This document shows, one piece after another, positions 28,691 through 37,186 of a DNA stretch of 64,000 nt (position 1 is its first letter; each line of letters starts with the position of its first letter). Source of the DNA: Ramazzottius varieornatus. Lineage: Eukaryota > Animalia > Tardigrada. The translations under genes were made by a program, and so were the position numbers. The notes beneath the pieces are model-generated. The model made no database searches and had not been told where the DNA came from. It saw nothing but the letters and a program-made list of their open reading frames with translations. The stretch spans positions 5,074,448 through 5,138,447 of the forward strand of contig BDGG01000002.1 in NCBI GenBank assembly GCA_001949185.1, given 5' to 3'.

Positions 28691-31505
28691 TTAGACTTTG
28701 AAAGGAGCATCGTCTTCTATCAAAATATCACCGGCTGAACGGAGCCTTCGCGAATCTTTGGCTCGTTGGAAAGCTTGTTTTGATCGTTGTCTTGTGGCCA
28801 TCTGATGCATTTGAGCTTCGAGGACTTCCAGGTCTAAGGTGAGCAAACGGAAGGCAGTGCTGTAGTTTTGGGTAAATTTCGTCATGTGTTGTTCCAGAAT
28901 CTCCAGGCTGTTCTCGCTCTGGTTAGCAATTTCCGCAAAGTTCCGGTTCAAACGTTTGGACTGAACCGCTGCTTCCTCGTCTATCAGTTTGTCTCGTTGG
29001 AGAATCTGCTGTGCCCGTTCGAGCAGGCTTGTTTGGACAGCCGGATACTCCTGCAGCATATCAACAAGCTGACTCGCAGATAAAAATGGGCTTGGTTCAT
29101 TAGACGCAGTTCACCTTTAACGAGTCCCATAGGTCCTCCTTGGACAAGGAAAACAGATCAGCATAGCCCACCGCGCGAACGTTTGCCGTCCGCCGATTGC
29201 CATTTTTGGAACCGGGAACGTTGAGGATGCTGAGTTCGCCGAAGACAGTTCCTGCGCCAAGAGTAGCGAACACTTTGGTTCCATCGTCGCTGACCACGTT
29301 CAACTTGCCTCTCTTCACGACGTACATCTGCCGACCGATGTCGCCTTTCCGACAAATGTAATCATCTGGACTGAATGGCTGCAGGCATGAAAGAGATATC
29401 AGTACAGATGGCGAGGTCTTATCGTTAGCTTACAGCTATTACATGTGTAGTAATCACGGAGAAGACACCCATGTACCTGGAATCTTAGTTTGAGCACTAG
29501 TTCCTCCAGAAATTGCTCGTCAAGTTCGTGGAACAACTTCACTTGTTTGAGCACGCTGATATGGACAAAGCGAGCAATCTCCATTCGCAGTTTCTCCGGA
29601 AGTAACGTGAGCACGGACTCTTCGTCCAGGTCTTGCTTGGTCGACCAGATGTAATTGAACCACCGGGTGACCCGAGAATCCATATCAGCTCCCACCTGAA
29701 AAAAGCGGGGATTACCACCGTTTGGTTCTCTGTGGGGGAAAAACCATCCAAAAGAATTTTCGTCCTTTAAATTTTGCCTGTTGGCTGTTTTGAGTTCTTG
29801 ATTGATTAAGTATTGAGAGATTCAATCTGCGACATCGATTAAAGCCATTTTTAACTGTCTTACTTTGTGGACTTGTAAGTAGCCTTTCACGCCCTCTTCT
29901 TTCGACCGAAAGATGTCACGCTTTTTGTTGATGTCCAAGATCATCCGACTTATCCGCGCCACAATGGTGGCAAAGACCAACATACCCACCAGGATGACAG
30001 CACAATGAAAAATATGCTCGGCGGTGGTGGTGGGGTTGTTCATGTTGGGAAGAATGGAGGTGAGCATCATGGCAGACCAGTAAGTGCAGAAGCTCCATTT
30101 CTGCCAGAGGGTATCCTGCTGGTGATCGGTTGTGTTGGTGCGCCAGCGGGCGGTCGCCGGGTAGACCCATACGTCAGATCCTATGCCAATTTGTGCGCTG
30201 ATGAAGTAGTACAAGCAGCCGTTGATGTGCGTCAGGATGGCAAGGATCGCGATCTGCAAGAGGAAGAATATAATGGCATGACGGTGTAAACGTCAGAAGG
30301 ACACGAGCGATGATTAGGAGGGAAGGCAAAGTGAAGTGTGCATGTAACATGCGACGAATCCCTTTTTGCCTCATAGCAATTGTGAGGGATGTGCAAGTAC
30401 CGAAAGTACGGAAGGATCGTGTTGTTGAGTGCTCTTGAAAAATCAATTTAAATTGACGATCGATCGAATAAACGTCCGATATAAAACGGCATACGTACCA
30501 GCACGCCGATGCGGATCAGGATAGGCGAGGAACTTCGGGTCTCCGCACGATAAATAAACTCGGAAAGACGGTGCATTCGGAACAATCGGTTGATCCGAAC
30601 AATGGGATATGGGACTCGATATCCAGTGAAGATGAAACAGATGTCGGTTGGGAGAAGACTGAGGATGTCGAGCTTTGTTTTGGAGCTGGTTCTGTACTTG
30701 TGCCATAGCCTTCGGGGTTCCCTGAGCACAATGCCATTCTCCAAAAAACCTAAAAGAAAAATCTATCGTCAACTATACCTTTAGATATCTTTATTTGCGA
30801 TGTTATCACAACCGGTTTGCCGTAGAGAATTTCGGAGGAAGGCACAATGGGCTGTTGCGAGAAATACTTTACCTGATAGAAAGCTGGCCACCATATCGCA
30901 AACGTAAATGAAATCACAGGTATAATCCAGGACGGTAAACGTCGTTCGAAAGCCACAGTCGTCCTCCAACTGTTCATAGACAGCGCGAGGAAATATCAAC
31001 AGAAGGTTGTAGATGACAGCCAGAGATATCACAGCTAGCCAACGATAATTCCATTTGGACCAGGGTTTCAAGACCCATTTCGGGTTGAATCTGCAAAGTC
31101 CGAAACAAGAACTCTACAGTTTCATAGTTGTCGAGTAGAGTGCAGTTCAGTCCGGATTCAATCACATTGCTCGGACAGATTAAGGATTGCTGACCTCAGC
31201 CCATATTTCAGTGCGTAAGGATCGTTGACCACTGGCTCCGCATATTCAAGATTAGCGAGCTCTTCTGCGGCAACTGGATCCACCGAAACCGAAACGCTCT
31301 CCGGTCCACTATCATTGACCCGCCTTCGATTTCTTCTTGGATTTGAACTCTGTAAAAAAGCTCGTATTTGGACATTTTGGATGTACAGGTTTGTTTTTGA
31401 GATTGAGCGTACCTGGAATAACCGTATAGCCCAGGCAAGTCCATAGAATGAAAGTCGTCCGGACCGGAAAAGTCTCGAAACGCGGAAAGATCCTGGCTTC
31501 GTCAT
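28691..31505 (-). CDS. Cyclic nucleotide-gated channel alpha-like subunit, divergent pore (CNG-1)
   Basis: S1 [19 protein letters not shown]4 [15 protein letters not shown]-linker [55 protein letters not shown], and a C-terminal leucine zipper. Start is uncertain. Confidence 0.93.
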
Positions 31506-32730: not shown

Positions 32731-35700
32731 TCAGCTCTGCATTAAAATGGCTTTGGGAGGAACAATGCCCTTGTAACTAGCCATCAGATTGGCCAGTCTT
32801 TCAGCGAGCTTCCTGTTGATCTCGACATCTTCCTTGGCATATATCTCCAGTCTGGCAGTGATAATATCCAGACTTTCCTCAAGCTTGTCAGCAACGGCCT
32901 CAAAGTTCCTCTGTCGCCGAGCTTGCTCTCGCGCGACTTCCTCATTGATGAGGTTATCCTTCTGCAGAATCTTCCGGGCCTTTTCCATTAACAAATCTTT
33001 CACCTCCGGATACTCAGCAAGACAGGCATCAAAATCCTCTTTTGAAAGACTGAACAAATCAGCGTAGCCGACAGATCTTACTGTCACTGTGCGTCGATTC
33101 CCGTTCACGCTACCGGGAACGTTCAGAAGACTCAGTTCGCCGAAGACTACACCGGCTTTCAACGTGACAATGACTTTTTCTCCATCAGCTGCTATCACGT
33201 TCAGCAGCCCACGCCGCACCACGTAAATCTCTCTTCCGATATCACCACGCCTACATACGTAGTCTCCGGGACAAAAAGCCTATAATAAATGACAAGCATC
33301 TTTGGTTGATTGAAAGCTAATTAGATAATCGTTAAACACATAATCACTTGTACAACATATTCACTGCATGTAGTAACCAATGTAATGACCATTTTACCTG
33401 GGGCTTCAGTTTTTCAGCAAGTTCTAGCAAGAACTGTTCTTCGATGCCTTGGAAGATCGGCACTTTTTTCAGGACGTCGAGATGGACATGCTTGGCGATC
33501 TCCATCCGTAGTTTTTCCGGTAAGATCATCAGTACGGAGTCTTCATCCAGAGACCCGTTGTTCGCCCAGATGTAGTCGAACCACTTCACGACCCGCGCTT
33601 CCATTTCTTTCCCCACCTAAAAGTTGCCGCAAATTACGTATCTATCTTTTCGGAGAAAAAAGAAGAATATATTATCATGACTCGATTCTGCTTACTCTTC
33701 GCATGCTAATGTATTGACGAACAGAGTCCAGATGTTCCTTAAAGTCGTCCGACTTCTTGTTAATACTCTCAATGATACCGTCGACCTCACCGACAATGGT
33801 GGCGAACATGAGGATACCCAGAAAGGCGTCGGCCAGATGGAAAACGAACTGGATGGTACTTGTCGGGTTGGCAAGCTCGTAGGGCTTGGACGTCATCATC
33901 TTGACGGACCAGTACATGCAGTAAGAGTATTTCTTGTACAGAGTGTCGTTGATGAACTCGGCACTCAACTTGATCGGCTTGTGGTGGCCTCCAGCCCCTG
34001 CGCCAGCAGCGTGCTCGTCGCCGCCACCCTCACCATGCTCGCCTCCGCCTACTCCATGTCCACCACCAGAACCATGTCCCGAGTCTTCACCGTGTCCGGA
34101 AGAGCCATGCCCATCCGAAGAATGATGAGAATCTCCGTGCCCTTCCGCAGTACCATGGGCTGATGAGGAACCATGCCCATGGTCGCCGTCACTTCCGGCA
34201 TGGCTGGAGGAATTTCCGTGATCTGACGCAGTTGCGTGCGATCCATGCGAGCCTGCCAGCAAAGTACTGAATATCAGTCACCATTGACCCAGGCGAAATA
34301 ATATCGGATTTTGTACGGCAATCTCGAAAAGTATAAAATCTTAAGAACGAGCCAAGGCTCTTTCGGACAAAGTCCGAAAAATTTGCAAGCGGGTACCTTC
34401 GTGGGGTGCACTGTTGGTTCCATGAGCGTCGTCGATCGAGGCTCCGTGTTCAGTACCATGCAAACCTGAAGAAGAACTTGCATGGCCTGCCGAAGAACCG
34501 TGGCCTCCATGGCTGTCCACGTTGTGGTCCGCGGTATGGTCACCACTATGATCTAACGTCTGGTTGATGTGATCAGAAGTGTGGTCTTCATCCATCATGG
34601 CGATATCGTTCGAGTCGCTCCGTCCCCGCCCGTCATCATTATCCGTCACAGGACGTTCAGTGGCGACGTTGCGACCGGAAGTCGGCGTGCGTGGTAACTG
34701 AGACTGATAACTGCGGCTGTTGCCAGCTGTGCTGGACAAACTAGGGCTTCCGTTGGGATACCTGACTCCCCCACCAACAGGCTGACCTACCCACTGCGAC
34801 GGATCTTCATGTTGTCGTTTTATCCTCCGTATACTCATGCCGACATCTCGACGAGCTCTTCGCCCCGTCTTAGCTTTCTTACTTCCACCCGCATTGTCCT
34901 GCAGATCAGCTTCGTCTGGAGAGTTATGGTGTCCTCTGGGCGAGTGTGAGTTGCTCAGGTCCACCAGTGTCGAACCGTGGGATTCTGCTTTGTCTAACGA
35001 GCCTCCCGAAGGAAAGATTTCGGTACCGTTACCGGATATCAGACCCCCTGTACCATTGACGCGGTCTCCTCCACCGTGGGTGGCAATTAAATCAAATGTG
35101 CCGTTGTTATCATGGGTGAAAATACTGTGTGATAAGTCATCTTCGGTATGGTTCCCTCCATCTGGACCGTGAGTGGAATGCTCCCCATGTCCTTCACCGT
35201 GGTGACCTTCGAGATACCGCCAGCCTGCGCGTCCCGGATACGCCCATCGATCCAGGCCGATTCCCACCAGCGAACTCACAAAGTAGTACACGCAGGCGTT
35301 GAGGTGGACGACCACTATCATGGTCAAAATCTGTAAAGCGGCAACAAATTAGCATCGAATTAAAATGGAGCGCGTGCAAGTGAAATGAACCAGGTCGTTT
35401 TCCCAAGTCGCGCACGCGCCCAGTTGATGCAACGGAGACGGGTGCCACTCGATATAACGATATGGCTCGGTTCAGCTGCCCTCGTCCCCCATGAAATGCT
35501 CCGATTTAAAGACTGATTCGATGAAAATTGGAATGAAGTAGAAAAGAATATATTAATGAGCTCCAATCATGGATCTCTGGGCAAAAAAGTGGGTTATCGG
35601 CGGCCCAATTTGCGGAACAACGGTCAACAGTCGGTAGTCAAATTGTTCAGGAACCGGGTTTTAAGTTTTGGGACCCCGAGGGAAAAGTTAAACTACTGAG

Positions 35701-37186
35701 GCAATCTGGTGTAACATCGAGGAACATGATGCTGGGGTTCATTTGGCCGGCCGTCCGACCAGAAGTCACGTGGCTACGCTAGAATAACCTGAAAAATCTG
35801 GAGTTTGAAGATTTGGAGACATCTTCTGACGACACAGTGACGCTCTAAAGCGGAAGAATGCGCCTGTATCTGTTCGGACACAAAACACCATGTGAGGGTA
35901 TCAGGCTACTCAGTTGGTAATCACCCCAGAACTTTCGGGTAAATTTTCTCCGAGGGGCCGCAAAGAATTTTGTAAGAGTTCTATCTGAGGGGAAGCCAGA
36001 ACTCTAGGGCAGTCGATCGCCTTGAATTGTGTCAAGAACTTCATTTCAAAAAAGGCGTCGTTCTGAGTCAAAAACTTCGTTCTGCAAACTGGGCCGCCGA
36101 TACTCAAAAGTTGTATTCACTATCGCTCCTCTTGCACGGCGATCAATATTGCACATGGGTGTTCGCTCTTCGGAAACCTTGTGGAAAATTTGTCTGTTAC
36201 TGTGTGCGGAGTCTTCGTGGGCAGCTGTTGCGCATGGGACGCGCGTGGCGCTGGTGTGGCGGATAGAGTTGACAAATACATTATGAATAATCGTTGATAT
36301 GGTGCATTCTTTTCCGACACTCTCGCGAGAAGGACTCCTGACACATACCAGATATATAAGACGGAAAGTATTGGGAGAGTCCAGACGGGTTTGAGCACGG
36401 TAGTAAAAGTCTCCAACACGGCCTAGTCGTAGGAGACGATTGATGCGTAGTATCGGCCAAGGAGCCAACCAGCCGGTGTAGATAAACAGAAGGTCCGTCG
36501 GGATAAGGCTTAGCACATCTTTGATGAAAGTTGAGCTCTTAACATATCGCCTCGCTAGTTTCCGAGGCTCTCTTATCAAGATGCCGTTCTCCAAGTAACC
36601 TGTAACGATGAATCTTGAGATACGTCAAGTAAGTTTCACAAAATATATCTGTGTGTCCAGCAGCAAACGAATACCGGTCTTTCACGGACCTGCATACATC
36701 AAACTTACAAGGCTTCAGAGCCTCGAGAGTATGCAGGTGCATGAAATGCAGCAAATCGTGTTTCTTGTGTGAAGTATCACTTACCTGTCGAGAGCTTTAT
36801 CAACATATCGAGTAAGTAGAGTGTATCACAGAGGTAGTCGAGTACGGCAAAGGCATAAGCTTGAGGTCCATCCTGGAACTCGTGAAAAACTGCGCGGGCA
36901 ATGATGAAGATTAGGTTGTACCATACGGCACATGATATTATCACCAGCCATTTGAAATAGATGTCGGACCAGGGTTTTTGTGCCCATTTAGGATTAAACC
37001 TGCAACAGCCCGGTCGTTCGGATATTCAGAAAGTAAAAGCGCGGCCTGAAATGAGAAATGCGGAACTATAGCCCGTGTTTACCTGAAACGTCCATTGAAC
37101 AACAGATAGGGATCTTTCACCAAGGGATCCAGCGTGGTGGTTCCTGGTGGTGGAAGGTCTCGCCGACCTCGACTATTGGGCGCCAT
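32731..37186 (-). CDS. Cyclic nucleotide-gated channel alpha-like subunit with ~375-aa His/Gly-rich turret insertion (CNG-2)
   Basis: S1 YFKWLVIISCAVWYNLIFII, S4 PILRINRLLRLGRV, S5 HLNACVYY, the insert, pore helix YSYCMYWS, S6 FATIVGEV, and CNBD FGELSLLNVPGSVNGNRRTVTVRSVGYADLF. Seven coding exons. Confidence 0.92.

Follow-up and report, generated by a model that had tools for sequence, protein, structure and literature searches.

A predicted giant His-rich turret in a divergent CNGA-type channel gene of the tardigrade Ramazzottius varieornatus

The stretch of DNA considered here is a window of 64,000 nucleotides from the tardigrade Ramazzottius varieornatus (NCBI GenBank assembly GCA_001949185.1, contig BDGG01000002.1, positions 5,074,448 to 5,138,447 of the forward strand); unless another contig is named, all coordinates are positions in this window. 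It harbours two adjacent genes for cyclic nucleotide-gated (CNG) channels, CNG-1 and CNG-2, which belong to the same family, lie on the same strand and both have a non-canonical selectivity filter. In CNG-1 (29822..30259, minus strand; filter at 29945-30082), S5, pore and S6 are encoded in a single exon, and the turret, the loop between S5 and the pore helix, consists of the 8 amino acids (aa) TNTTDHQQ. The corresponding loop of CNG-2, from the GWR motif that ends S5 to DTLYKKY, is exactly 375 aa long, is open in frame over two exons and contains 44 His residues. These readings bear out the initial annotation, which had put the two loops at 8 and about 375 aa, placed a phase-1 intron at 34396-34253 within the longer one and counted some 44 His in GH/SH/DH repeats and about 8 N-X-S/T sequons, the latter being resolved into 7 within the loop and an NDT at its edge. 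The loop is probably a real turret expansion that is translated, confined to the lineage and borne by a divergent subunit of the CNGA type.

The gene model of CNG-2 (Table 1) covers S1 to the stop codon, with N-terminal exons upstream of about 37000 lying outside it. Similarity searches and AlphaFold predictions were run exon by exon, and exons were concatenated only to count residues, open frames and codons. All six exons could be read from S1 to stop with open frames and GT-AG borders. Exon A opens with the translation ILTMIVVVHLNACVYYFVSSLVGIGLDRWAYPGRAGWR and its frame stays open through to the donor; together with exon B it amounts to 934 + 557 = 1491 nt, or 497 stop-free codons, whereas the intron between them contains an in-frame stop at 34343-34341. 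Exon order was supported by tblastn with XP_055332189.1 (P0005), the CNG-1 orthologue of Paramacrobiotus metropolitanus: its residues 1-479 fall on the CNG-2 exons in order, and its residues 164-170 bracket the entire insert. The phases of the flanking exons agree only if the loop is retained. At the level of single exons, the S1-S2 exon is supported by a Pfam Ion_trans match (19.7 bits) and by colinearity with P0005, the S3-S4 exon by Ion_trans (24.7 bits) and tblastn matches to P0005 and P0003, and the C-linker exon by 55-64% tblastn identity to the same two sequences. The S5 segment of CNG-2 finds matches at five paralogous loci of the genome.

Table 1. Exons and segments of CNG-2 in the window and open reading frames of other assemblies that carry an insert at the same site
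Feature	Position	Strand	Description
S1-S2 exon	36785..36999	-	FNPKWAQKPWSDIYFKWLVIISCAVWYNL...LIKLSTG; 5' edge approximate; acceptor TTGCAG, donor ACAG/GTAAGT
S3-S4 exon	36349..36599	-	YLENGILIREPRKL...ILRINRLLRLGRVGDFYYRAQTR...FRLIYL; 251 nt; phase 1 in, phase 0 out
Exon A	35330..34397	-	acceptor TTTACAG (35331); 934 nt; phase 0 at start; donor GAAG/GTACCC
S5 helix, 5' part of exon A	35217..35330	-	C-terminal end DRWAYPGRAGWR
Turret insert, part 1	34397..35216	-	273 codons and first base of the split codon
Turret intron	34253..34396	-	144 nt; phase 1; GT-AG; acceptor GCTGGCAG/G
Turret insert, part 2	33948..34252	-	101 codons after the split codon; ends at the conserved HHKPIKLSAEFIN junction
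Exon B	34252..33696	-	557 nt; frame runs into HHKPIKLSAEFINDTLYKKYSYCMYWSVKMMTSKPYELANP...FATIVGEVDG
Pore helix, non-canonical filter, S6 and start of C-linker	33696..33947	-	filter MMTSKPYELANP; Pfam Ion_trans and PDB matches
C-linker exon	33398..33616	-	VGKEMEARVVKWFDYIW...LKPQ; 73 codons
CNBD and C-terminal leucine zipper exon	32731..33279	-	terminates in the stop codon
P0001 (Logan, 221 aa)			S5, then at least 186 open codons; 7.5% His; four sequons; starts LPAGSHGASHATDHKDSHKD
P0007 (ENA, 235 aa)			end of S5, then 192-aa insert; 9.9% His; starts EEHHAGGHEGGAHE
P0008 (ENA, 197 aa)			about 69-aa Gly/Glu/His tract, HHKPIRVSEEF, then odd filter MMTSKPYEIANP

The identity of the gene could be deduced from the conserved exons. 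Ion_trans (PF00520) was recovered exon-wise with 19.7, 24.7 and 20.1 bits over profile positions 7-56, 60-114 and 168-240; the 25-bit cut-off applies to whole proteins, and each exon falls just below it since it was searched singly. These matches, combined with the colinearity with XP_055332189.1, identify a six-transmembrane core. The cyclic nucleotide-binding domain (CNBD) was recognized by cNMP_binding (PF00027) with 34.8 bits against a cut-off of 27.5, and the leucine zipper typical of A subunits by CLZ (PF16526) with 37.8 bits against 26.7. In the PDB, the pore exon matches TAX-4 (4e-13) and CNGA3 and CNGA1 (about 5e-11 to 6e-11) far better than CNGB3 (4e-4). The same ranking was obtained with the exon for CNBD and zipper, for which TAX-4 (1.2e-44) and CNGA3 (1e-43) head a range of matches that extends to 2e-39, compared to 3e-27 for CNGB1. 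Alignments to CNGB proteins break off at the CNBD, whereas those to TAX-4 and CNGA3 take in the coiled coil as well; within the CNBD, the alignment to TAX-4 keeps FGELS and, in NRRT, the phosphate-binding Arg-Thr. Because of the CNBD and CLZ hits, the TAX-4/CNGA matches and the weaker CNGB matches, CNG-2 is, by homology, a CNGA-type subunit whose ligand-binding module is intact. A CNGB-type identity was rejected on the far weaker CNGB1 and CNGB3 matches and the presence of CLZ, and CNGB-like loci with the motif GQIRDV lie elsewhere in the genome. These two loci, L011 and L012 (G000:C2:2.23 Mb and 3.79 Mb), are marked by TIIGNLNFPG and GQIRDV and have Cys-containing turrets of about 35 aa.

The filter of CNG-2 departs from the family pattern. 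Instead of the canonical T-I-G-E-T/V-P, represented by TTIGEVPSP in TAX-4, it reads TSKPYELANP, with the Gly lost, one extra residue and the Glu aligned. The same filter (33864-33914) recurs in P0008 with a single replacement of L by I (MMTSKPYE[LI]ANP), and the filter variant of CNG-1 is conserved in P0005 and P0006. Judged by this conservation in relatives, the odd filters of both genes are under selection. CNG-2 may be a modulatory subunit rather than a self-conducting pore.

The statistics of the insert resemble those of coding sequence. The probability that a frame of 374 codons stays open was estimated from base composition at about 1.9e-7, and 20,000 shuffles gave no open frame; in the remaining five frames of the loop, 2-21 stops occur per piece. 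For 44 His among 374 residues, the binomial P is about 4e-17, a value that depends on an assumed background of 2.5% and not on one measured in this genome. A search for tandem repeats with TRF and for long direct DNA repeats revealed no real ones in the insert. His codons are mixed (CAC 21, CAT 23), and Gly, Ser and Asp likewise each use a range of synonymous codons. Recent slippage thus does not account for the composition, and the low complexity, encoded as it is by varied codons, is a property of the protein; on the same grounds a recent microsatellite-type expansion was rejected. An origin as a copy of another gene or of a mobile element was discarded as well, since the insert occurs only once in the genome.

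The loop is made up of 73 Gly, 54 Ser, 44 His (11.7%), 34 Asp, 18 Glu, 23 Lys plus Arg and no Cys, so that 52 acidic residues are present, and large hydrophobic residues account for only 12%. Among the His dipeptides, GH occurs 12 times, SH 8 times and DH 7 times. From the N- to the C-terminus, part 1 of the insert comprises a His/Gly/Glu cluster, a Gly/Ser/Thr region that bears sequons, an EADLQDNAGGS island, a basic segment with RRARR and RRIKR, a Ser/Pro/Arg region and an acidic tract rich in D-H and G-H; part 2 is a tract of Gly, His, Ser, Asp and Glu. His residues are dense in the first 100 or so and the last 175 or so residues, and the centre is basic and His-poor.

AlphaFold models S5, the pore helix and S6 as helices (S5 at residues 2-29 with a predicted local distance difference test score, pLDDT, of 84-90; exon B helices at 103-120 and 132-184), and assigns a pLDDT below 50 to the whole insert. 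No Pfam family was found on the insert or on the inserts of its relatives, and a search of the ESM Atlas returned no usable match. A hidden folded domain was rejected on the missing Pfam family and the low pLDDT, though weakly, as the alignments were shallow. The loop thus presents dense His (44 in 375 aa) with carboxylates nearby in a segment that is predicted to be disordered. The insert contains neither hydrophobic segments nor Cys. Since it is also open in frame and single-copy and carries sequons, the loop would belong to the extracellular or luminal turret side, and we infer that it lies above the pore and faces outwards or into the lumen.

Other CNG genes of the same genome provide a clue to its origin. 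The turrets of CNG-1 and its Paramacrobiotus orthologue P0005 measure 8-11 aa and, unlike that of CNG-2, have no intron. In a further CNG gene, L002 (G000:C4:3890185-3893334, about 1600-1850), which has the canonical-type filter TIGEVPGP, the turret is 51 aa long and contains 7 His (14%) after an intron of about 60 nt has been removed. This turret resembles that of CNG-2 in that it bears His (HGHMNEE ... AHPHGDEF ... SPAHF) and is interrupted by an intron that agrees with the turret intron of CNG-2 in its phase (1) and its donor context (GAAG/GTAC in L002, CACGAAG/GTACCC in CNG-2), after which His-rich text resumes (AHPHG in L002, GSHGSH in CNG-2). It differs in being seven times shorter, in its canonical filter and in having neither a basic centre nor a long acidic Gly/His tract. 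The HGHMNEE motif recurs in P0002-P0004, which are relatives of L002. The agreement in phase and donor is suggestive of a common origin of the two turret introns, and the comparison suggests that the lineage of CNG-2 started from a turret which already had His and an intron and then gained some 259 aa upstream and 63 aa downstream of that intron. Measured against the 51-aa turret of L002, the CNG-2 loop thus looks like an extreme expansion of an existing trait.

The remaining CNG-type turrets that were read in this genome (L003, L005, L006 and L011-L013) are about 35 aa long or shorter. In the CNGA-like L006 (G000:C4:2556468-2559602), a phase-1 intron with the donor GAAG/GTAAGC lies five residues before the WR motif that ends S5, and the subsequent pore exon is itself split. 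This intron (PGE/A) was considered as a counterpart of the CNG-2 and L002 introns and rejected, as its aligned position differs. Among L013 (C1:1.99 Mb) and L014 (C15:0.86 Mb), one has the filter TNIGDIPRP and the other is a KCNH-like K+ channel (TSTGYGD). P0003, an open reading frame (ORF) of 398 aa from Logan, is nearly identical to L002 and continues in frame across two introns, the one in the turret and a later one; it would seem to be genomic, unspliced sequence from a close relative. With ORFs of this type the turret comes out at 67-81 aa, longer than it is after splicing.

Relatives of the insert itself were detected in other assemblies. When 1.84 billion representatives were scanned with exon A by HMMER, 7 matches were obtained; 2 of them have an insert at this site, and exon B retrieved a third sequence with one. 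The three sequences, P0001, P0007 and P0008 (Table 1), have His-rich inserts that are acidic, free of Cys and sequon-bearing, contain 7-10% His and share conserved islands. The S5 of P0001 is identical to that of CNG-2 at 33 of 36 residues. P0007 is similar to the loop alone (E = 1e-6) around EADLQD[ND]AGGS and the basic site, and its ORF ends at a G/GT point comparable to the turret donor of CNG-2. A homologue search with exon A, exon B or an alignment returned only P0001 and P0008, within a length window that leaves out models of about 900-1000 aa, and a scan of JGI metagenome contigs found no relatives. Were this region intronic, open frames of such length downstream of S5 in three diverged sequences would be difficult to account for. 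Taken together, the comparisons have shown the CNG-2 loop as a coding-like stretch inside an intact CNGA-type gene, with homologues at the same site.

It is conceivable that the loop hangs over the pore mouth like a canopy, as a polyelectrolyte that can be titrated. According to a pKa model, its net charge would be about -29 at pH 7.4, would vanish near pH 5.75 and would reach about +19 at pH 5. At neutral pH, the -29 charges of each loop might concentrate cations locally in the outer vestibule, and protonation of the 44 His would cancel or reverse this charge. Binding of Zn, Cu or Ni to clusters of His and carboxylates might shift the charge likewise and make the chain more compact, and conductance or divalent block would be altered. 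The best candidates for functional sites are the His clusters that are anchored beside the membrane at either end, GHHGEGHGEH following S5 and HHKPI preceding the pore helix, as they recur in relatives, while the long middle would be a fast-evolving spacer. Since its filter is non-canonical, CNG-2 probably works in a heteromer with canonical CNGA subunits. This charge and metal mechanism is doubtful by itself, and the full explanation, turret expansion plus canopy, is tentatively preferred without reaching the point where we would call it probable. A still bolder version, in which the loop serves the channel as an extracellular input, being a tethered His-based lid or blocker on a heteromeric CNG pore that collapses or reverses its charge with acid or Zn/Cu and is matured by furin-type cleavage, is a long shot.

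The initial annotation had seen in the loop a lineage-specific ectodomain that couples extracellular metal, protons or osmotic and desiccation state to a cGMP-gated channel. A lineage-restricted turret insertion could be substantiated, but a His-rich turret as such is shared with L002. As to the cGMP-gated channel, the non-canonical filter leaves room for a modulatory role. Metal and pH sensing through the loop is a reasonable hypothesis.

Several observations weigh against a functional turret of this kind, and they are considered here with the alternatives that they favour. The most resilient alternative, though somewhat unlikely, is a tolerated low-complexity expansion, i.e. a disordered glycosylated spacer that grew by drift, for instance through exonisation at the turret intron, and that has no sensory role and at most the effect of a passive glycan or charge shield or an influence on trafficking. 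The relatives diverge fast and with many indels: the insert is about 37% identical to those of P0007 and P0001 in a gappy alignment, the match of P0001 to the whole exon is limited to S5 and the first 28 or so loop residues, and P0001 has no significant similarity to the loop when S5 is omitted from the query. Insert length varies from 375 aa to roughly 190 plus 70 in P0007 and P0008, turrets of 8, 51 and 375 aa coexist in one genome, and the His content of the relatives lies below that of the CNG-2 loop. The His residues are unevenly spaced, mostly 3-8 residues apart and hardly ever as HxH, which argues for many weak sites over one defined site. The excess of sequons is marginal (7 observed, 3.45 expected from composition, P = 0.04). 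Neither a fold nor a Pfam family was found, and the AlphaFold alignments are only 2-3 sequences deep, so that the low pLDDT is a weak sign of disorder. On the other side, the acidic, Cys-free composition with 7-14% His is found again in the three relatives and in another paralogue clade, the two terminal His clusters are conserved together with the EADLQD.AGGS and HHKPI islands, and the mixed codons and absence of repeats argue for a composition that has been maintained over time.

It is also possible, but improbable, that most of the loop is spliced out, in which case the dominant mRNA would use cryptic sites or extra introns within 35216-33948 and the long frame would represent a minor or tissue-specific isoform. 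The initial annotation had stated that the loop cannot be removed without losing S5 or the pore helix unless cryptic sites exist. The phases indeed fit only with the loop, but in-frame GT..AG pairs that would remove most of it are present, for example donor 35206 with acceptor 33997, and by a crude consensus score they equal the real 144-nt intron. P0001, P0007 and P0008 are ORF fragments called on contigs of other tardigrade-like assemblies. No annotated full-length protein with the insert was found in the representative scan of protein libraries, from which the records of the source genome itself were possibly omitted. Against removal stand the poor pyrimidine tracts of the candidate cryptic acceptors (0.25-0.5), the 375 open codons, for which an intron has no need, and the 186-192 or so open codons that follow S5 in P0001 and P0007 despite their divergence.

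A third explanation, compatible with the titratable turret and hardly probable as the main purpose of the loop, is that it serves chiefly as a processing site for a furin-type protease, which would leave a channel of two chains or free an inhibitory tract. Such cleavage is familiar from ENaC, where it takes place in extracellular loops. Two motifs of the R-X-[KR]-R type expected of proprotein convertase substrates, RRARR and RRIKR, are spaced 9 residues apart in the middle of the CNG-2 loop, where it is basic and poor in His (34815-34862, minus strand; loop residues about 117-134), in a segment that is predicted to be accessible. The only short helices that AlphaFold draws within the insert (161-170) overlie these motifs. 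At the aligned place, P0007 has RHRR; P0001 has only RAAR, which is a merely minimal R-X-X-R, and such motifs are short and the region is rich in Arg anyway. Finally, CNG-2 is most unlikely to be a decaying duplicate, i.e. a pseudogene or non-functional tandem copy of CNG-1, for although the canonical TIGE has been lost and the paralogue adjoins the gene, its conserved exons are intact and colinear with XP_055332189.1, all six are open from S1 to stop with GT-AG borders, the CNBD/CLZ exon is strongly similar to TAX-4 (1e-44) and CNGA3, and the conservation of the odd filter in P0008 points to purifying selection.

Tardigrades have the largest repertoires of CNGA and CNGB genes reported (PMC9803222), and a CNG gene of Hypsibius was reported to be induced on desiccation (PMC5531438); unusual members of the family are therefore of interest for environmental sensing in these animals. 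If the loop is retained in the transcript, it would provide a testable case of a disordered polyelectrolyte that tunes an ion pore from outside, for which the turrets of 8, 51 and 375 aa in one genome form a natural deletion series. If the lid reading were true, the channel could integrate external chemistry, such as concentrating solutes in a drying water film, with internal cGMP.

CNG channels are cytoplasmic sensors of cyclic nucleotides with small outer turrets, which in TAX-4 and the CNGA proteins measure roughly 10-20 aa. To our knowledge, the family is gated from the cytoplasm only, and we know of no larger turret in it; nor was a description of such a CNG turret found in a literature search. 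CNG-2 shares the order of S1-S6, C-linker, CNBD and leucine zipper with TAX-4, CNGA1, CNGA2 and CNGA3 (5h3o, 6wej, 7lft, 8ev8) and is set apart from them by the 375-aa turret and by a filter that reads TSKPYELANP where TAX-4 has TTIGEVPSP.

Parallels to the loop also come from other protein families. In invertebrate CaV3 channels, S5-P loops above the filter tune permeation and block by Zn and Ni (PMC7382465). Like the CNG-2 loop, they are lineage-specific enlargements between S5 and the pore that lie over the selectivity filter (PMC7382465), but they are short, structured, bridged by Cys and swapped by alternative exons, whereas the CNG-2 loop is long, free of Cys, predicted to be disordered and rich in His. 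Metal-binding disordered regions such as the His-rich region of plasma histidine-rich glycoprotein (PMC10103162) and the His-rich loops of ZIP and ZnT proteins (PMC7949119) likewise present dense His in a disordered, acidic and glycosylated context. The CNG-2 loop has no sequence homology to them (no Pfam match) and lacks regular GHHPH or HxH repeats. Its setting differs too: histidine-rich glycoprotein is a soluble protein and the ZIP and ZnT tracts belong to transporter loops, whereas the His tract of CNG-2 sits in the pore loop of a channel.

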